Assembly: GCA_001643675.2 (NCBI GenBank)
Contig: LSRY02000032.1
Coordinates: forward strand, 806,001 to 870,000
Length of the DNA stretch: 64,000 nt
From: Monocercomonoides exilis PA203
Lineage: Eukaryota > Protista > Preaxostyla
Direction: 5' to 3'
Of the stretch, positions 15,489-27,463 are shown one piece after another (the stretch's first letter is position 1; the number at the start of each line of letters is the position of its first letter). The notes beneath the pieces are model-generated. The model saw only the letters and a program-made list of their open reading frames with translations. It made no database searches and had not been told where the DNA came from. Position numbers and translations under genes: made by a program.

Positions 15489-18400
15489 ATGTCTGATGAT
15501 AGTAAGTCGTATAGTTCTACTTCAAGTGGCTCCATGATTGAGTTTACACAGGCTGAAGGACTAGGGAAATTTGATGAAATATTTTTTTCAGTGTTTTCAC
15601 CTTTGTATAACCAAACAAAACACCCAAACAATTTCCTGCATGTATCCATATGGGTATTCATGATTATCCAAATGGTAACTCTGGGCATGTTTAGAGTTGA
15701 CATGACTTCTCAAACCGTAAATCTGATTTCATCTGTGTGCTCTTTAGCTATTTTCTGAACTTTAATTTTTATAATTTTATAAAATGCTTCTATTTTATGA
15801 TAATATTTTTAAATTTTATTTGAATTAAAATTGCTTTTTCTTAAACAGTACATTTGCTATCCTGATGGAACATCCCTAAGCTATTTAGCAGGAACATATG
15901 TATCATACATTACGATGGGCATATATGCTTACATAGTTATTCTTACTGCGTATTTAGCAGTTGTCGCTATATTTTATCGTTCGATTGCTGGATCACAACC
16001 TTGGATTATTGATCTTTTGCGTTGGATCACAAATGCAACATTTTCAGTTTTATTTATTCCAATAGTTACATTTAGCATAACGACATTTGATTGCTTTGAA
16101 TTAGGGGGACAACAAATACATCGTTCATCCAATGAAGCTTGTTTTAGTGATGCAATATCATTAAGTGGAATTATTATTGGAATTATTGGATTGGCATATT
16201 TTTTGGCAGTAACTTTTTTTTTGAAAAGCATGATTTTCGAGCATCATCCCAAACATGGAGGGCTGTGGTCATCTCCAAGTGGAACATGGCAAGCAGTTGA
16301 ATCGTGCATGATTTATGGATGCGTATTTGCAATGCGTATGCTTTATGCTTGGCCGTTTTGGCGCGGGGTGGTTACAGTTGGAACATCACTAGGGATTATT
16401 CTTTATTTTATTTTGAAGCAGCCAATCTATAAGCTCCCCGGAAACATACTGAGAGCAAGCTCATGGTGTATTTTTGGGTGTGTGCGACTGTTTGGAGAGA
16501 TTGGATATGCCATTGAAGGAGCAATAGGGCATTGGGTTGTTTCACTATCACTTCAGATATTTGGTTTGATAGTGGGAATTGTGCTAAGTGCAGCTGTTCT
16601 ACCAAAAATAGCTCATAAAATCAGAGAGAGTAAATATCTATTAGCATCAACAGGAAACCCCTTGATTGACATACACTTTGAAAACATATCAACTGCGTTT
16701 CCAAATATGAACAATCCAGAAAGAATTGAACCTTCTCTGCGATTTGTCCAGATAGACTCGTTTCGCTCTCAGGACCATTTGTCATTTGCGGAATATATTT
16801 ATACCCAAGGAATCAAAGCCAACAAAAACAATGGAGAGCTGTATTATCTGTACGCGTCTTTCTTACAGGCCTATCGAAAGAACTACATGAAGTCACAACC
16901 TCTTCTTCGGAAGGCGCGCTCATTGTCGCCCGGGTTCTTTCTCCGGTTTGTATTACATTGCAAATCCAAGGAATGCAACACCAGCGAAGGTGGGGATGCT
17001 AACAGAGGCCGAATGAGCGAGCTTACATCACTTACGTTTGTATCGCTGATATCAAAGGCAGAAAACGGATATGACAGAGCAGTGACTGCCTTGAAAGAGT
17101 TCTTTGAGAACATTACATCGTCACAGCCTGACTACAAATCGATGCTCAGATTGCTGAACGAAATTGTGAAGAACGAGAGCATCTCGCGCAAAAGCTACGA
17201 GGAGCTTTTGGCGACACACGGACAAAGCACAAAAGTACTGAGGAACTACGCACGATTGCTTCTGGATATCTACCACGACGAAGACTCAGCTGAGATGATT
17301 CTGAACAGAGCTGATCTGATCGAAGAAGATGGCACAAGCATGGCAGAGCCTGCTGTAATGGCAGGCTTTTCGACGGATATGGAAATACTGTCTAATCCAA
17401 TTGAAGTGGATGTACCTGGCTTTGGAAAGAAAATCGGGACAGCGAGAAATAACGATGAACGCAGAGAATATAGAGAAAATGATGGAGCAAACGTCTCGCA
17501 ATCTTCAAAGGACGATACATGCGCCAATACACAAAACGAGAATGAAAAAAACAGCAAACAAGCGGAGGGAAATGAAAATACAGCACCTTTCACGAATTAC
17601 TTCTCGAACGAGCAGTACAAAGCATTCGATGCGCAAAACGCCACAACTGCCTCTGATCCACAATGGAACCAGCAGCAAGACGAAGGCACGAAGAAAGGAA
17701 GGATACAGAACTCTAAAGCGATTAGGCGCAAGAGGAGAAACAAGAAGAAGAAGAAGAAGAAGGAAGCACTTTTATCTGACATGTCGATAAATATTGGAAC
17801 CTCGACGAACGATGAATCCGACAAACAGACATCAATACTGATATGCACATTTGGTACCTTATATTTTATGGCTGTAGCCGCCCTGATTATAACGCTGGTG
17901 GTGTATCTAACAATGTCAGAGACATACAAGCACGATCTCGACACTCTTCGAGAAATCTGCGACTTGTCGTATTTTACTGCTCGCTCAGGCTCCTTGGGAT
18001 ACAACTACTTCATTTACGACATTCGCTTTAATTTCTCTGCTCAGGTTCTGGTGGACCAGTGGGAGCCGACGCTGACGCGGAAGGTTGTGGTGCAGCAGAT
18101 GCTGTCAGAGAATGCAGAACGGCTGACGACGATGCTCGGAAAAGTGCACGATACGACAACAAACATGGAGCCGTGGGAGGTCTCGAACATCAACACTTAT
18201 GTCTTCTCCTTTACGACAAAGTTCGAGACCCAGCCAAGCGGTGTTGTGGAAGAAGTTATCAAAGAAAAGATTCAGGTGCTGAAAGTGTCGTCGATGCTTG
18301 AGGTGATTGCAACGATGTCTCAAATGTGCCGCTATTTGTCTGAGACAGACATGCTTTCGCGTCCAACTGAACCAGACTACCTGAATGACATTCAGTACTT

Positions 18401-21326
18401 GTCGTTCAATGCACTTGTCCCTGTTTTGGACGGAGCAAAGCGAGTGATTGTGTCTTATTACGATCTGATGAACGAAAATTGCGATCAAATCATTTTAGTC
18501 TTTTTGCTTTTGGTTACTCTCACAATCGTTCCACTGACTGTGCTTAAAATGTATTTGCTCATTTATTTTACACTCAAATCTGTCAAAGAAAGACAGCGTG
18601 CATACCACGCAATGCTGGATGTCCCCAAGAGCAAGATGCAAGGAGCCATTCGATACTTGCTGAGTGATGAAGACAACGACGACTACGACATACTTAGTCA
18701 GATGTCGCAGATGAACAATGCTTCGAAACAGTCAGACAGCTTTGCCAACAACGAGGACGAGATGTGGACAGGCAAATCGGCTTCTGATTCTGCCGCAGAA
18801 GCTTCAGAAGAAGGTGAAATGAACGACAATAGCAAATTCTCTGCCAATAATCAAATAGCAAGTGATGCGAAGTTCTCAAACGACAATGCTGCTTTGAAGG
18901 CACCTGCCTCGTACACACCAAGCTCCAACAGCAACGGTCGTCCCCAAAGCTCCTCTATTCTCACGTTCTCTCAAATGCCTTCAATCAGCGATGAAAACCT
19001 CAATGTTCAGTCAACGATGCTACCAAACCCTGTTGCCATGTTCCCCAATGGTGGAAGTACATCGCCTCAGCCTTATGCTAATGGCATTGCACAACCTTCA
19101 ACCGTGCCTCATATTTTGTCAAGTGTTGATCGGTCATATAGTGGAATCAGCTATTATTCTCAGAGCTCTGTCGACAACAAAGGAATGTTGTATAGCAGGA
19201 CAAGCCAACCGTCGTCTGTGCGGACAATTCTCAACGTGAGCGATGGAAGCAATAACAATAACAGCAACACTGGAACAGACTCAAACATACAAAGTGCTCG
19301 AAGCGCGTTGTTTCCGATGGATCAATCACGATTGGACACTGATTGGGCAGACAGAATGAATGTGATGACGAAGTTGAGTGCAAGAGACAGTGGAGTGTTC
19401 AACGAGGCTGGCGGATACAAATACAACAATCAGGCATTTGGTAAGGTGATGGATCCCTCTCAAATGATTATATCTCCAAATCCCCAAAATTTGGGCGATG
19501 GCCAGCTTCCAAAACTAATGTTTGGATCATTGAATAATCAACAATTCACGAATCAAGGCACAGATTCAACAGGTTTTTCACAACAACTTATGACATCTCA
19601 GCTTCCATACAACATGATCAACATAACGCCCAATTCAGATTTATCCAATGGATTATATCCTTCTTCTTTTTCTCCAGACGGAGTTCTTATTGGATCTCCT
19701 CAAAACTCGATGGGGATGATGGGAATGGAGCCAATGATAAAGACTTTGCCAATGAACAGCGAATATTCAAAGTATGCGATGCCATCTGAGCAACAAGCGA
19801 ATATATCTCAACAGTCGGATTACATTCAAAAAACACAGAAAGACGATATCAATCAAGGCTCAAATAGATTTAGTTCTTTAGGAACAGCCTCGAGGCAGTA
19901 CATTTACGATGACGATGAAATGGAAAAGGAAAAGAAACTTGGAATTGTGCGAAATGCCATTGAGGATAACACTTGGGAGGAAGCAATGGAAAAAAGCATT
20001 GAGAAATTGGAGATTGCATATAAGCAGCTGCCGAGTCCTGTTACAATTCGAATGAAAATAAACATTGCACTTACGGCTGTGTTAGGCTTTGTGGTGACTG
20101 CGACACTGGTTGTGCTTGTGTTGGTGTATGAGACAAATTACAAGTCGACGTCAGCAAACATCATTTTGTCTGGAATGAGAGCATCCATTTTGTTCCAGAT
20201 CCAGTATCTGATGATGAACATCCTTCAGCCTATTCCATTGATAAGAACCAACCAGTCTGTCACATTTCCCCGCTCCGTGAATCCTGTTCTGTACAACTCT
20301 TCGCACTGTTCGGGCATGCAGAACGTGTCGCACGCGTTGCTTGTGCCCATTTCGCGATACTTCGAAGCCGTCCATCTGAAGTGCCATTTTGGCAATTCGC
20401 CTTACGGGAATTCAGGTGATCGCACGTACGACTCTATATCAGTGAATCGCCTGGGAACTGACATCAACCGCCACATGCTGCTTGAGGCTGCGTCCTGCTA
20501 TCACACAGGCATAAGCGACTGCTCCCAGCTGGATCCTTACAGAATGTATGGCGTGATAGGAACGATATACGGCCTAACAACTATTCTGGCCAGACTGCGA
20601 ATTAATGTGGAGAAGATCTCAAAAATGAATCTGAGTGATTTAACCCCAAATGTTACTGAAGCTCGTTTTGTAATGACGTCTCTGCGAAATGATGTTGTGG
20701 AAGGGATCAACCAGATGACAGATTCGATATTAGGAACAGGAAAAGCAGAAGTGGATGAATCAAGGGCAGTCATATCTGTTGTGATTGGTGTCTTTAGTGC
20801 TTTGTACATTATCTCATTCTTTGCAAATGGGTTGTCTTGGGCTGAAGAGAACAGATTTATTCGAAGCGTTTCCTTTAAGCTGCTTAAACTGCTACCAATC
20901 GATGCAGATGAAAAAGACATTATCATGATGCCTTCAATGAAGACAGAAAACGAAAAGTTTGATCGCTCAAGAGAACTCATTTTGGATGTTGCCCAGCAAC
21001 TTGTAACCGCAATAAAACAGTTTGAGAACTTCAGCGTGTTACGTTCGATGTATGAGCAGCTTTTGGCTACAGTGATGGCTGTGTTTGCAGAAGAAGAGAA
21101 AGAAATGGAGCGACTTTCTTATTCAGGCATCGAGAAGCACAAACGAGAGCATTTGCTGCTGAGACAGAGGCTGACTTTTATTGGAGATCATTTGCTGACA
21201 AAGAATGAAGTGGCTACTGCAATCAGTAAGAAATCTCTGATATCTCTTTTTGACATGCATTTTACTGATGAAGATATCCATTTTGCTGAAACTGTTTTCA
21301 AAGTTAAAGAGAAAACTATTGAATAA
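15489..21326 (+). CDS. TmcB/TmcC (tiny macrocysts)-like polytopic membrane protein with TPR region and C-terminal hemerythrin-like domain, ~1,907 aa
   Basis: Exon 15489-15734, intron GTGTGC..CAG at 15735-15848 (an in-frame alternative donor GTAAAT lies at 15717), exon 15849-21326. It has an N-terminal multi-TM block and TPR-like helices (LYYLYASFLQAYRKN; YEELLATHGQSTKVLRNYARLLLDIYHDEDSAEMILNRAD). Two TM-ectodomain-TM modules follow, then VFAEEEKEM...Y...HKREH...HFTDED at the C terminus. Confidence 0.75.
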
Positions 21327-22012: not shown

Positions 22013-25000
22013 ATGTCGCATCCTTTTTTATCATTTCTTAACCTGATGTGGGCTCGAACAGAAAAAGGAAATTCATTTTCTTTAGCGCGAATTCCACAAA
22101 CAGTTGTAATTTCGAATGGAATATTAACTGATTGGTATTTTTGCTCCTCTAAGGATGGTTCTTTAATGAAAAAGAATAAAGCGAACGTTACTGCAGAAGG
22201 AATTATAAACGCATTTACAAAAAATAAGCATGGAAGTGGAATTGTGGGTTATTTCGAGGGTGTAATCCAAGATTTTTCTTCAGGATCCAGTACATCCGTT
22301 ACTGATCGTATTTCATTTTTGAAGGAAGCGGATTTACGGAGATTACTGAAGAATCTTAATGGTGTTCATGGAATTTTACAAGAATTTATTGAACCACAGA
22401 GCAAGAAAAACACAACTATAACTGTTAGCTGGACACCGTCGTTATTTATATGTGAAGAAAAAGTTAATCTATATCTCCTTACAGATGAAATTGATGTTAA
22501 TGTGAAAGGAGTTACTTTTCAAGGGCCAGATTATTTTGTTCGGAGCTGCTTATTTGAAAGTGGGGGATATCGAAGAAGAATGACATTTATGTGTGAGGGA
22601 ATTGACAAGCATATTAGAGAAATTACAGATAATTCTCGAAGCGTTTTGCGAATGACGATTCAATTCAAAATAGATGGCAATCTAAAATTGTGGCTTATGT
22701 GGGTTTCATCGTTTGCACTACAGCAGCCAAGATTGGCAATCGGATCAACTTCAGCTTCATCGAGCTCTACTGCGGCTGAAAATAGTTCGACCCAAGCTGC
22801 TCAAATTACAACTCCTTCATCAAGTTCTCGGATGTCAGCAGATCAAACAAATGAAAAGGACGAGAAAGCTGTTCGCGAACGGAAAGTACCTGCGATGCCT
22901 ATGAATAAGGCAAAACCGCGAGCGAGAATTCCGGAAAAGCTGCCTCAAGCTTCAACGGCTCGAACCGGGTATGTGTTTGAGGGAAGAATGAGACAAGAAT
23001 TTATTGGAGAACAGTCTTTATTTGGAGGGGGAAGGGCCAAATCTACTGAACCTTCAAGGGGAATAAGCAGAGAGAATAGCGGAAAAAAGAAAGATATGCG
23101 CACGCGGGAGTATCCTGGAGGAAGCATCGAAAGAGAAACAATCAAAGTCAAGGCCAAGAAACGATCTGACATAAGCTCAGAGAAGAAGAGACCTGCCACA
23201 ACAGGAGCAGTAACAAAAGCGCAATTCGAAAGAGGAAGAAAAAGCGAAATAACTCCCGACGAAAACGAAGAGGATTATTCGATGTCTCATTCACAGAAGC
23301 GCCAGAGGCCGGCCACACATGCTGCAGACATGAGCCATCTGCACAAGTCGCCCAGCAGCGACTGGAGTTTGAAGCGAAGTCTGCTTGCGTCGCCTGTCAG
23401 GCTGTGCTCGTCGCTGCATCTGAAAGCGTCGCAGGAAAGGCAGCTGTTGTATTTGATGACGGAGCGGGCACGCAGCCAGCGAAGTTTGAAAACGCCTGAT
23501 AATCAGAGTTCTTTGAGCCAGATGAGAACTTTGGAGATGTCGAACGAAGGAATGACAGGAAGAAATACAGAGATATACGAAACGATAGAAATTAACGAAG
23601 AAAATGTTTTGAATGAAGAACACAGTAAAGATGGATACGAACAAAAAGTGAATGAAAGAGAATTTAAACTTGCTGAGACCGAAGCAAAGACGACTGAAAG
23701 ACTTGGAAGTGAAGAGCCTGTTGTGTTTGAGAGGAATTTCTATATGCGTCCAAAAGAAGAAGATGAAATGAGAATGGATGAGCCAGAGTCTGCAACGCGT
23801 AATGAAGGAGAAAGAGAAAGAGAAGGAATTGAGAGAACCACGTCTGCTGATGAAACAACTGAAAATGGGCAGGAAGCTAACAGATACACTTCTCATTCGA
23901 TGGAGCGCAGAAGATTGAATGTTGTGTTTGCATCAACTTCACCTGAAACAGAAAGCGGATCGTGTGATGATATTCCTCAACAATATGTCCAATACAAGCA
24001 GAGGAGAAGGAAAGCACTTGCACGGCGCAGCAAAAGCGGAGCGCGAGGAAGGCAAAGAAGCAGGCCTCGAAAGAGGGTTGTTAATGAAGAAGCACTTCTT
24101 GCACATTTAAGTGAACTGAGCAAGCCGAAGAGCGTTGTGATTGGAACGACCAAAGGAAGAATGATGGAAAAAGCAGAGCGAGAAAAAGAAAAAGAAAAGG
24201 AAAGAAATGCAAAATTTGAAAATGATGAACAAGATGAAGAGATTGAAGGAGAAAATGCAGAACAAAAGGATATCAAGCCACACGATCATCAAGATGCATG
24301 GGCATTAAGTGAGGATGAAGAATACGAGGCGCAACGTACATCGCAACAAGCAAAACAAGGCCATTCAGCCAATCCGAAGTCTTCTTCGAAAGGAGCTGAC
24401 AACGCAGCTCCAGCTGTTGTTCTGACAGAGGCCGAAAGGAAGCGAAGAGAGGCACGAAACAGAATGGCAGCGAACTTTTTGTGCTGCCGGAAAGATCCGT
24501 ATGAAACAGCATTTGCAGCGGAGTCTCAGGCGCAGAAGCGAATGAGAGAGGCAGAACGGAAAAGAAGAGCGGAGAAAGAGAAAGAGAAGAAGAAGGAAAT
24601 GGAAAGACAGAAAAAGGAAAGAGAGAAGTTCATTGAGCAAATCAACAAAGAGAAGGAGCAGCAGAAAGTGCTGGAGGAAAGACAGAAAACAAAAGAAAAG
24701 GAAAAAGGAGTTCCAAAGAAAAGCAATCAGAAGGGTTCCAATGAAGAAAAATCAGAAGAAATTGAAAGAGAAGAAGAAGAAAAGCCCAGAGAGAGACAAT
24801 TTCAGAGTGGATGCTCAAATGAAAGAGAGGTGCAATCAAAGAAGAAATCAGAATTGGACTCAAATGAAATATCACCCACGAAATTCAGATCTGTCTCGTG
24901 TTCTGGCAGTCGCTTGGATACTCCAACACGCACACGCAATTTCAGCGCACCAAAACGCGAAGCGCAGGTAGAAACAAAGAAAGCGAGTGCTTCAGCAGCG

Positions 25001-27463
25001 TCTGATGACACTCAGATGGAACCGAATAATCATTCATCTGAAAAGCCACTTCACAATTCAGAGCAATCAGCCACTTCACAGACCGCACATCACACCCAAT
25101 CCACTTCAAAGTCTTCTTCAGCTGTCAAATCACATTCATCTTCACAATCCATTTCACCAAAAAAAGCAGCCAAACCCGAATCCAAAACACTACTTACTTC
25201 TCGTACACCAAAAAGCAGCAAATCTACTTCTAACAAACCCCAATCAGCAGCAGCGTCTTCTTCTCTTTCTAACAACAACGCAAAATCCGAAGCGCATTCA
25301 TCTGATGTGCTCGCAACTCCGTCCACTTCAACAAGAACTCCTTCTTCAGAAGAGAAGCCAAAGACTCATCCAAAAAGGCAAGTTAAGCGATCACCTCAGA
25401 AAAGTGAGTCTTCACCTCAACGTGGATCAACTATTTCATCCCTTTCACTTCCACAGTCATCGCCGTATGGGAACAGACAAACACAGAAGCAGAAAGGAAA
25501 AGCAGGACAAGCGAATAAGCCCGAAACGAAAGAGGAAAAAGTTCAGTCAAAGGATAAAGATACAGATGGGAATATGCCGCAAATCATAGAAGAAGAAGAA
25601 GAAGATAAAATTATTAATAATGGCACTGGTGACAAAGAAGAGAATAATGATCAGATATCTGAAGCACAGGAAAACAATTCTCATACTGACGAACAGACGA
25701 ACGAAGAAATTGACCACGAAACAGAAAAAAGAGATGCAAATGGTGAGAAGTCGATGACAAGAGAGTTTGATTCACATTCAACAGAGGAAGATGATTATGA
25801 TAAGGATCGAATACAAAAAATTGAAGGAACGAACAAGCCAGACGAAGATATTCTGGTTAGAGATTTCAAGAGCAATTCTGATGAGGCGACAATATCAACA
25901 AAAGATGAGAAAGACTTGCAAGAAGATTTAGACACACATTCAGAAGGAAAAGAAGAGAAAAATGAAATTGAAGAGAGAGACTTCCGAAAAAATGAAGAGA
26001 AAACAGACGAAAACAACAATGAAAAGGACGAAATGAAGCAAATTGGAGAGATTGATTCAGCTATTGAAACAGCAAATGCAAAAAGGGAAGATGAAAAAAT
26101 TTATTCGGATGGTTTTGAAGGAGATGATGTTTCATTAGATAGAAACGAACTGCTTAATGAAAATTCAAAGTCAAAAGAAGATAAAGAAGCAAAAGAAATG
26201 GAAGAAGAGGAGATTGCAAATGAGATGAAGACCGAAGGTGAGAGCGAACAAGACAATTTGGTTGACCAATCAATGAACAATTCATCTTCGGTGGAGAGAG
26301 TTGGTAAAGATCACACAGAAGTAAGTGCTGAGAAAGATGATGATTATGAAGGAGATTTTGAAGAAGATGAGGTGAATGCAACAGATGCTTCAAATCAAAA
26401 CGAACATATTTTAACTCCTAGCGAAAGGGAACAAGACAAATCCGAGCAGCAACAAGAAGAACTGAGTGGGCATCCAATAAGCATGCAAGATTTGGAAGTC
26501 AGTGAATTCAGCAAAGCAGTCACTGAAACAATGGATGAAGGAGAAACACAATATTCAAAGGACTTTGAAGTCACAAGCAGAGAGTCACTTTCTGTTGATG
26601 GAGAAAACGTTGATGATGCAGCTGACATAGCAAATGGAGGAGAACAACAAACAAGTGATTCATTATCTGCGCAAAACAATTCTTCACTAGAGAAAAAGGA
26701 TGAAGAAGCAGCCGAAGATTACTACAGTGAAACGTTTGAGAGTCAGGTTGAAGAAGAACACGATGCAGACGAAAAATCGAAGAAAGAAGAGGTTTCAGAC
26801 TATCAGAACGATGAATATGGGTACGACGACGAAGAGTTTGAAGCAGAGGAAGAAGATGCGGAAATGGAAAAGAGTGAAAGAGATGCAAACGAAAATGCGA
26901 ATCAAACGAGCAATTCAATGGAACATCAGGCACAAACTGAAGAGAGTGCAGAAGCGATTGAGGAAGTTAATCAAGAAAACAATGACGTTCAAGTTGAAAG
27001 TGGTTATGGAGACGACTTTGAAGAGAATTACAGCGAAAACGAAGAGAAGGACACGGGAAAAGATAACACAGAAATGCAACAGAAGGATTATGAAGATGAC
27101 ACTTTTGAAGAGGCTGACAACTCTGCAGATAATCAAAATGATGAGTATGAATATGACGAATCATTTGAAGGAGAAAATGAAGAAGAGGTGAAAGAAGATG
27201 AAACAAACGAACAGATTGAAGATTCTGGAAATCAGGCTTATCAAACAAGTGCGAGTGAATCAGAACCAGCTGAAAATGCAGAGGATTACTACGAAGACGA
27301 TGCATTTGAAGAAGATGCCGGTGACGTTACCCAACAAGATGAGCATTCCAATGGAGAATATTCTGAAGGAAACTCATCTTCAGCTCGCCACAGAGCCGAA
27401 GACGAAGAAGCTTTGAAAGAACTTGAAGCATTTTACGATTATCAGAATTATCAGAGAAATTGA
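22013..27463 (+). CDS. Uncharacterised 1816-aa protein: ~240-aa conserved-looking globular N-terminal domain (possibly ATP-grasp-like), coiled-coil/disordered middle, acidic tail with repeated Y-x(3-4)-F-E motifs
   Basis: Single long ORF. The N-terminal domain has RIPQTVV..DWYFCS, GILQEFIEPQSKKNTTITVSWTP, KGVTFQG and FKIDGNLKLWLMW; the rest is low complexity. The CDS is secure; the function is not. Confidence 0.8.
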   Translation: MSHPFLSFLNLMWARTEKGNSFSLARIPQTVVISNGILTDWYFCSSKDGSLMKKNKANVTAEGIINAFTKNKHGSGIVGYFEGVIQDFSSGSSTSVTDRISFLKEADLRRLLKNLNGVHGILQEFIEPQSKKNTTITVSWTPSLFICEEKVNLYLLTDEIDVNVKGVTFQGPDYFVRSCLFESGGYRRRMTFMCEGIDKHIREITDNSRSVLRMTIQFKIDGNLKLWLMWVSSFALQQPRLAIGSTSASSSSTAAENSSTQAAQITTPSSSSRMSADQTNEKDEKAVRERKVPAMPMNKAKPRARIPEKLPQASTARTGYVFEGRMRQEFIGEQSLFGGGRAKSTEPSRGISRENSGKKKDMRTREYPGGSIERETIKVKAKKRSDISSEKKRPATTGAVTKAQFERGRKSEITPDENEEDYSMSHSQKRQRPATHAADMSHLHKSPSSDWSLKRSLLASPVRLCSSLHLKASQERQLLYLMTERARSQRSLKTPDNQSSLSQMRTLEMSNEGMTGRNTEIYETIEINEENVLNEEHSKDGYEQKVNEREFKLAETEAKTTERLGSEEPVVFERNFYMRPKEEDEMRMDEPESATRNEGEREREGIERTTSADETTENGQEANRYTSHSMERRRLNVVFASTSPETESGSCDDIPQQYVQYKQRRRKALARRSKSGARGRQRSRPRKRVVNEEALLAHLSELSKPKSVVIGTTKGRMMEKAEREKEKEKERNAKFENDEQDEEIEGENAEQKDIKPHDHQDAWALSEDEEYEAQRTSQQAKQGHSANPKSSSKGADNAAPAVVLTEAERKRREARNRMAANFLCCRKDPYETAFAAESQAQKRMREAERKRRAEKEKEKKKEMERQKKEREKFIEQINKEKEQQKVLEERQKTKEKEKGVPKKSNQKGSNEEKSEEIEREEEEKPRERQFQSGCSNEREVQSKKKSELDSNEISPTKFRSVSCSGSRLDTPTRTRNFSAPKREAQVETKKASASAASDDTQMEPNNHSSEKPLHNSEQSATSQTAHHTQSTSKSSSAVKSHSSSQSISPKKAAKPESKTLLTSRTPKSSKSTSNKPQSAAASSSLSNNNAKSEAHSSDVLATPSTSTRTPSSEEKPKTHPKRQVKRSPQKSESSPQRGSTISSLSLPQSSPYGNRQTQKQKGKAGQANKPETKEEKVQSKDKDTDGNMPQIIEEEEEDKIINNGTGDKEENNDQISEAQENNSHTDEQTNEEIDHETEKRDANGEKSMTREFDSHSTEEDDYDKDRIQKIEGTNKPDEDILVRDFKSNSDEATISTKDEKDLQEDLDTHSEGKEEKNEIEERDFRKNEEKTDENNNEKDEMKQIGEIDSAIETANAKREDEKIYSDGFEGDDVSLDRNELLNENSKSKEDKEAKEMEEEEIANEMKTEGESEQDNLVDQSMNNSSSVERVGKDHTEVSAEKDDDYEGDFEEDEVNATDASNQNEHILTPSEREQDKSEQQQEELSGHPISMQDLEVSEFSKAVTETMDEGETQYSKDFEVTSRESLSVDGENVDDAADIANGGEQQTSDSLSAQNNSSLEKKDEEAAEDYYSETFESQVEEEHDADEKSKKEEVSDYQNDEYGYDDEEFEAEEEDAEMEKSERDANENANQTSNSMEHQAQTEESAEAIEEVNQENNDVQVESGYGDDFEENYSENEEKDTGKDNTEMQQKDYEDDTFEEADNSADNQNDEYEYDESFEGENEEEVKEDETNEQIEDSGNQAYQTSASESEPAENAEDYYEDDAFEEDAGDVTQQDEHSNGEYSEGNSSSARHRAEDEEALKELEAFYDYQNYQRN

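Follow-up and report, generated by a model that had tools for sequence, protein, structure and literature searches.

What becomes of a hemerythrin that has lost the ligands of one iron and kept those of the other is the question raised by the end of MONOS_7891, a gene of Monocercomonoides exilis PA203, an oxymonad of the gut that has no mitochondria. The gene lies at 15489-21326 on the forward strand of a 64,000-nucleotide stretch of contig LSRY02000032.1 (positions 806,001 to 870,000; this whole stretch is called the window, and coordinates below are counted from its first nucleotide), and it encodes, in two exons, a TmcB-like multi-pass membrane protein of 1907 amino acids (annotated protein P0001). 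Its residues 1766-1901 (20898-21305, +) form a half-site variant of a hemerythrin-fold domain, as delimited by profile alignment and by an AlphaFold2 (AF2) model; this envelope is slightly wider than the 20925-21326 given in the initial annotation. In hemerythrin the ligands of the six-coordinate iron are His73, His77 and His101, those of the five-coordinate, O2-binding iron are His25 and His54, Glu58 and Asp106 bridge the two irons, and O2 binding draws one electron from each of them.

The codons which the initial annotation had named are exactly where it put them, on the forward strand and in frame with the open reading frame (ORF) 15831-21326. Two of them are substituted, with Arg (aga, 20970-20972) at the His25 position and Val (gtg, 21081-21083) at the His54 position, and it is indeed both histidines of the O2-binding iron (Fe2), and no others, that are lost. 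The equivalent of the bridging carboxylate Glu58 (gaa, 21093-21095) is kept, as are the equivalents of His73 (cac, 21138-21140) and His77 (cat, 21150-21152) in an HKREH motif (21138-21152, +), and of His101 (cat, 21258-21260) and Asp106 (gat, 21273-21275) in an HFTDED motif (21258-21275, +). One turn past His77 there is an Arg-Gln-Arg motif (21162-21170, +), in which Arg89 (96%) and Gln90 (100%) are flagged as clade-specific, while Gln90 and Arg91 are invariant across the half-site clade. Because only five of the seven ligands of the set His25, His54, Glu58, His73, His77, His101 and Asp106 are present, the domain is not classed as a functional di-iron hemerythrin (PF01814), though it is a hemerythrin by descent and fold. 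As far as the residues themselves go, the site with three histidines and two carboxylates (His73, His77, His101, Glu58 and Asp106) is complete, and no His is present for a second iron.

The evidence for descent and fold comes from profiles and from the model. The window domain alone has no Pfam match of its own, and as a single sequence it finds 4xpx in the Protein Data Bank (PDB) weakly (phmmer, E ~1), with Val on His54 and HKREH on HKAEH; since single-sequence similarity is too weak, profiles are needed. A profile of 28 half-site paralogues matches the bacteriohemerythrin 4xpw over its full length (E 2.2e-11) and also DcrH-Hr over its full length (E 2e-7), with Arg aligned to the first His and Val to the second, so that the alignment to bacteriohemerythrin which had been made by eye is reproduced by HMMER. 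PF01814 is matched by 18 of the 28 clade members at E<=1 (best 9.5e-7), and the paralogue C26:930104 (L023/L038), with 43% identity to the window domain, clears the Pfam hemerythrin cut-off (29.3 vs 25.3 bits). The structure model that the initial annotation had proposed, built with the family alignment as input, is a helical bundle with a predicted local distance difference test (pLDDT) score of 92.3 and a predicted template modelling (pTM) score of 0.86. When it is compared with known structures by VIA-align, DcrH-Hr comes out best (Z 18.4, root-mean-square deviation (rmsd) 1.8 A over 132 residues), ranks 1-14 are all hemerythrins, and generic bundles come next with Z <=13.6. Foldseek gave poor E-values for the same model (best 1.2e-2) despite template modelling scores of 0.82-0.88, and the VIA-align ranking is clear. 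A four-helix bundle of about 115-135 residues and significant profile similarity, as in the hemerythrin family (PF01814, HHE cation-binding), are thus both found, and the model and profiles together show the tail, as predicted, to be a hemerythrin-fold four-helix domain descended from a bacterial-type hemerythrin.

The domain is one of many in this genome. The window tail has 49 matches, which nearly always end an ORF of 1700-3600 codons; the Pfam hemerythrin model adds 19 further such ORFs, and iterated profiles unite all loci into one family. When counted with the family profile, the domain has 68 matches at some 62 separate loci, and the ligand states of these were taken from the columns of the profile alignment. 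Arg25 without His54 occurs in 30 of the 62 loci, His25 without His54 in 13, the canonical pair of His25 and His54 in 12 and Asn25 without His54 in two, and positions 25/54 are unresolved in the other five. His25 is missing solely where His54 is also gone (32/32 loci, with Arg as the replacement in 30), and loss of His25 with His54 kept is seen at none of the roughly 62 M. exilis loci. The other ligands are nearly always in place among the resolved loci: Glu58 in 62/62, His73 in 60/62, His77 in 61/62, His101 in 55/59 and Asp106 in 59/59. Position 54 is Val in 23 loci, written in four different codons, and otherwise Ala, Ile, Thr, Gln or Tyr. Whether the two losses co-occur, as the initial annotation had asked, therefore has a divided answer, in that both histidines are gone in the Arg25 loci and His54 is lost alone in 13 paralogues. 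Read from these ligand states, the losses are ordered in M. exilis, His54 going first and His25 only after it, nearly always to Arg. MONOS_7891 itself has Arg25, no His54, the five other ligands and the R-Q-R-L motif after His77, and so belongs to the oxymonad half-site clade.

Several members of the family deserve separate mention. Three loci (L016, L033 and L055, at C60:352059-352460, C47:219035-219370 and C25:860552-860788) have a stop codon in frame, or no more than a short ORF, around the domain and are probably pseudogenes or fragments. Two pairs on single contigs look like recent duplications, namely L005 and L006 (C37:64045 and C37:582030), whose tail translations are identical and whose position-by-position DNA identity is uninformative because of indels, and L017 and L018 (C39:705636 and C39:533428), with branch lengths of 0.008 and 0.04 in the tree. 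Insertions of 20-140 residues between helices are present inside the hemerythrin domains of L030, L047, L052, L054, L056 and L058-L065, so that in some of the family long loops break up the fold. In L044, L049 and L051 (C91:576539, C25:1074488 and C2:778093) an otherwise intact site has Asp or Glu for His101, which is a swap on the other iron.

Selection on the half-site domain is visible in both the protein and the DNA. In the 28-sequence half-site alignment, 12 of the 138 columns are invariant and these include all five retained ligands (hypergeometric p 2e-6), and paralogues with identity as low as 28% still keep His73, His77 and His101. The suspicion that the loss was non-random is borne out by this, and the loss is confined to the two histidines. 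For the domain, the ratio of non-synonymous to synonymous substitution (dN/dS, Nei-Gojobori) ranges over 0.04-0.17 in the nine half-site pairs whose dS is not saturated, it lies below that of the upstream ~500 residues in 7/7 pairs where both were scored, and the intact-site paralogues have similar values (0.09-0.12). Arg25 is encoded by AGA at 25 loci, AGG at two, CGC at two and CGA at one; since four codons are in use, synonymous change has occurred while Arg was retained. The domain is maintained by purifying selection, in agreement with the earlier preference for a changed function rather than decay. Residues that might complete a normal di-iron site in another way, which would have spoken against that view, were looked for among the clade-specific conserved columns (Met14, Arg25, Arg89, Gln90, Asp97, Phe118 and Phe122), and among these there is no obvious substitute for the lost ligands near the site. 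Glu59 and Asp22 do not vary in any of the clades.

The history of position 25 is not a single step. A tree of 57 genes and 720 columns, mostly upstream of the hemerythrin domain, groups them into three clades, of 11 genes with the intact site, 13 genes with His54 lost and 31 genes bearing Arg25, with MONOS_7891 inside the last of these as sister to C27:361444 (support 100). Three His25 genes (L025-L027, at C2:90957, C58:1199952 and C58:1644268) are nested within the Arg clade, and a tree uniting all Arg-bearing genes is rejected by the approximately unbiased (AU) test (lnL, i.e. log-likelihood, difference 31, p-AU 0.0017; 22 rows, LG+G4), where the Arg-bearing group was named after the tree had been seen. 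We also considered that the nested His25 paralogues had received their domain by a swap from a His25 clade, and rejected this: their domains carry the clade-specific motifs, which makes a swap unlikely, and have 30-40% identity to the window domain, vs <=21% for the other clades. By the tree, then, position 25 has switched between His and Arg more than once, either by reversion of Arg to His (AGA to CAC, about three base changes) or by several parallel gains of Arg, and within the Arg clade it seems to be restricted to these two residues.

The same pattern is present outside this genome. Searched with the profile, 1.84 billion representatives yielded 11,534 matches at E<=0.001, and the top-scoring outside matches have the same Arg/non-His pattern and retain the five other ligands. 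Those top matches that were looked up belong to Blattamonas nauphoetae (several named TmcB/TmcC TPR, i.e. tetratricopeptide repeat, proteins), to Streblomastix strix and to metagenome/Logan fragments, and with Blattamonas and Streblomastix no fewer than three oxymonad genera conserve the pattern. An exception is the Blattamonas protein P0070, which has Arg25 with His54 kept, against the order of loss in M. exilis. P0012 from Blattamonas nauphoetae (KAK2960695.1, 3353 aa) has two hemerythrin-type domains, an internal one with His25 kept and His54 lost and a C-terminal one with Arg25 and His54 lost.

Bacterial hemerythrins sit lower in the match list, and 146 of 175 full bacterial-type domains have all seven ligands. 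Joint loss of His25 and His54 is found in 4/175 of them (Fisher p 8e-5, uncorrected for relatedness or for query/search bias). Such cases are bacterial tandem hemerythrins with a single degenerate repeat (P0080 and P0115/P0159 from metagenome-assembled genomes of Zixibacteria and Gammaproteobacteria respectively, and P0062 and P0049 from metagenome contigs), in which the same two histidines are lost together and of which P0062 also has Arg at the first position. The degenerate bacterial repeats are sporadic, stand beside intact repeats and in two of four cases also lack Asp106, whereas the oxymonads have an expanded conserved family. Judged by these matches, joint loss of His25/His54 is recurrent, and a large conserved family with it is found only in oxymonads.

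With bacteriohemerythrin and DcrH-Hr (PF01814; PDB 4xpx/4xpw and 2avk/3waq) the window domain shares the fold (Z 16-18, rmsd 1.7-2.4 A over ~130 residues), full-length profile homology and the ligands Glu58, His73, His77, His101 and Asp106. Unlike them it has Arg for His25 and Val for His54, and hemerythrin-type O2 binding is not expected. DcrH-Hr, a chemoreceptor sensor domain, is the closest solved relative, and in both cases the domain forms the C-terminal end of a receptor-like protein of the membrane; the carrier is a bacterial chemoreceptor for DcrH and a eukaryotic TmcB-type protein of ~1900 residues here. The canonical-site paralogues of M. exilis (e.g., C35:289575 and C25:57530) have the same gene architecture and domain position and fall into one superfamily with the window domain by iterated profile and by tree, but they have all seven ligands, clear the Pfam cut-off and show just 15-21% identity to it.

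The carrier protein gives the domain its setting. P0001, annotated as uncharacterised, is 100% identical to the window protein within the searched region, and its residues 1-1907 map to 15489-21323 with a 38-codon gap (tblastn). The hemerythrin-like tail is the 3' end of the long ORF 15831-21326 (+), whose stop codon is at 21324-21326, and the two exons are separated by a 114-nucleotide GT..AG intron (15735-15848, +), and each of the four RNA runs has contigs that show the joint 15734>15849 with 0 differences. One spliced RNA contig (6.0-6.3 kb, 0 differences) spans the whole gene in three of the four runs, and three overlapping contig pieces cover it in the fourth; with contigs across the gene and exact removal of the intron, MONOS_7891 is transcribed and spliced. 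The sole Pfam family found across the whole protein is that of the TPR_TmcB repeats (PF25474; 17007-17330, +; residues 393-500 of ORF 15831-21326; E 1.3e-15, 57.8 bits vs cut-off 27). These repeats lie between blocks of membrane helices, as in TmcB/TmcC-type proteins, and are flanked by at least nine strong hydrophobic segments according to a Kyte-Doolittle scan, which is a crude hydropathy estimate and not a topology predictor. In the same scan, two ~200-residue loops and two long low-complexity/TPR regions alternate between the membrane segments, and the last predicted transmembrane helix (P0001 residues 1722-1740; 20766-20822, +; score 2.45 over 19 residues) adjoins the tail. A run of lysine codons (R-R-K-R-R-N-K...) at 17729-17771, which was skipped as a repeat in the mapping of RNA contigs, stands just ahead of a membrane helix and agrees with a flank that is cytosolic by the positive-inside rule. 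The hemerythrin-like tail is cytosolic if the lysine-rich TPR side is, and this crude topology puts the tail, presumably, on the cytosolic side of the membrane. Next among the long ORFs of the window comes one of 1816 codons (22013-27463, +), whose low-complexity product is very acidic and has a high content of Glu, Asp, Ser and Lys.

As for the working of the domain, we lean towards a reading in which it binds one metal, has Arg25 in the vacated position, does not bind O2 in the manner of hemerythrin and serves as a module for regulation or interaction that depends on metal or redox state. The 3-His/2-carboxylate site would hold one metal ion, Fe being the likeliest, and the guanidinium group of the conserved Arg25 would reach into the vacated position, filling and neutralising it and balancing the two carboxylates that no longer bridge to a second metal. 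As O2 binding needs an open second-iron site and the electrons of both irons, hemerythrin-type O2 binding would be impossible for the window domain and can probably be ruled out. Placed right behind the final membrane helix of a TmcB-type, receptor-like protein, the domain could be such a regulatory or interaction module of its carrier. A few points weigh against this reading. The single metal is inferred, as is the role of Arg25, and the nested His25 paralogues L025-L027 mean that Arg is not obligatory for the domain type. The invariant Glu59 and Asp22 could in principle, with water, help to hold a second metal. The cytosolic placement of the tail leans wholly on crude hydropathy, and the RNA consists of contigs from four runs of one study, which show presence and splicing and not the level of expression.

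Should the second metal persist, it would sit on the bridging carboxylates with water, Glu59 or Asp22, as an open, labile or hetero-metal site of altered reactivity, and the invariance of these two residues would be accounted for; the 13 losses of His54 alone, together with the three nested His25 paralogues, likewise suggest a graded series and not a clean switch. We hold such a two-metal site to be improbable, since Arg binds metals poorly, a cation beside a second metal is unfavourable, position 54 is mostly Val, Ile or Ala, and no new ligand-type residue is conserved near the site. The opposite possibility, a metal-free pseudo-hemerythrin in which Arg25 (and perhaps Arg89) salt-bridges Glu58 and Asp106, fills the old site and leaves the bundle as a structural, dimerisation or partner-binding module, is doubtful, though it deserves a hearing. 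It has a parallel in the R2 subunit of class Ie ribonucleotide reductase, which is metal-free with a lysine in the former metal site, and it would agree with the presence of two clade-specific conserved arginines and with the fold search, where the bundles ranked after the hemerythrins are FAT-type protein-binding domains (Z 12-13). What it explains poorly is that His73, His77 and His101 are invariant over 28 paralogues and kept in three genera, which is hard to understand without a metal. To the idea that the tail is a functionless, decaying relic we give hardly any credence. The single sequence is without a Pfam match, and some members of the family are pseudogenes with internal stops (C60:352059, C47:219035 and C25:860552), but decay of this domain is ruled out by a dN/dS below that of the flanking sequence and by the 12 invariant columns, and the pattern is kept across three genera in a gene that is expressed and spliced.

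The main text of the paper on the M. exilis genome (Karnkowska et al. 2019, PMC6759080) lists hemerythrin only among the oxygen-stress genes, which on its account came mainly from bacteria; a search of that text for TmcB finds no mention, and its two passages on hemerythrin speak of no membrane-protein fusion, gene family or missing ligands. A search of the literature on half-site or mononuclear hemerythrins, on Blattamonas hemerythrin and on TmcB gave nothing relevant beyond this paper. New in the present analysis are the toggling between His and Arg at position 25, supported by the AU test, the order in which the histidines were lost, the dN/dS and codon figures for this gene and its clade, and the double losses that occur in parallel in tandem hemerythrins of bacteria.

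Two irons define the chemistry of hemerythrin, and a large, selected, expressed family that keeps the ligands of one iron, with Arg fixed in the place of the other, would, if the reading is true, be a natural experiment in going from a dinuclear to a mononuclear or metal-free site. One genome offers three states of the site for direct comparison: intact, with His54 lost and with both histidines lost. It is conceivable, and we put it forward tentatively, that oxymonads remade the bacterial di-iron hemerythrin as a sensor domain of a new class, with one metal and an arginine cap, and use it as the tail through which a large family of TmcB-type membrane receptors signals on the cytosolic side; together with the intact-site and His54-only paralogues it would provide graded iron, redox or O2/NO sensors in eukaryotes free of mitochondria. 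The family also hints at a way in which a eukaryote that is anaerobic and has no mitochondria might detect metal, redox state or oxygen at the cell's membrane.

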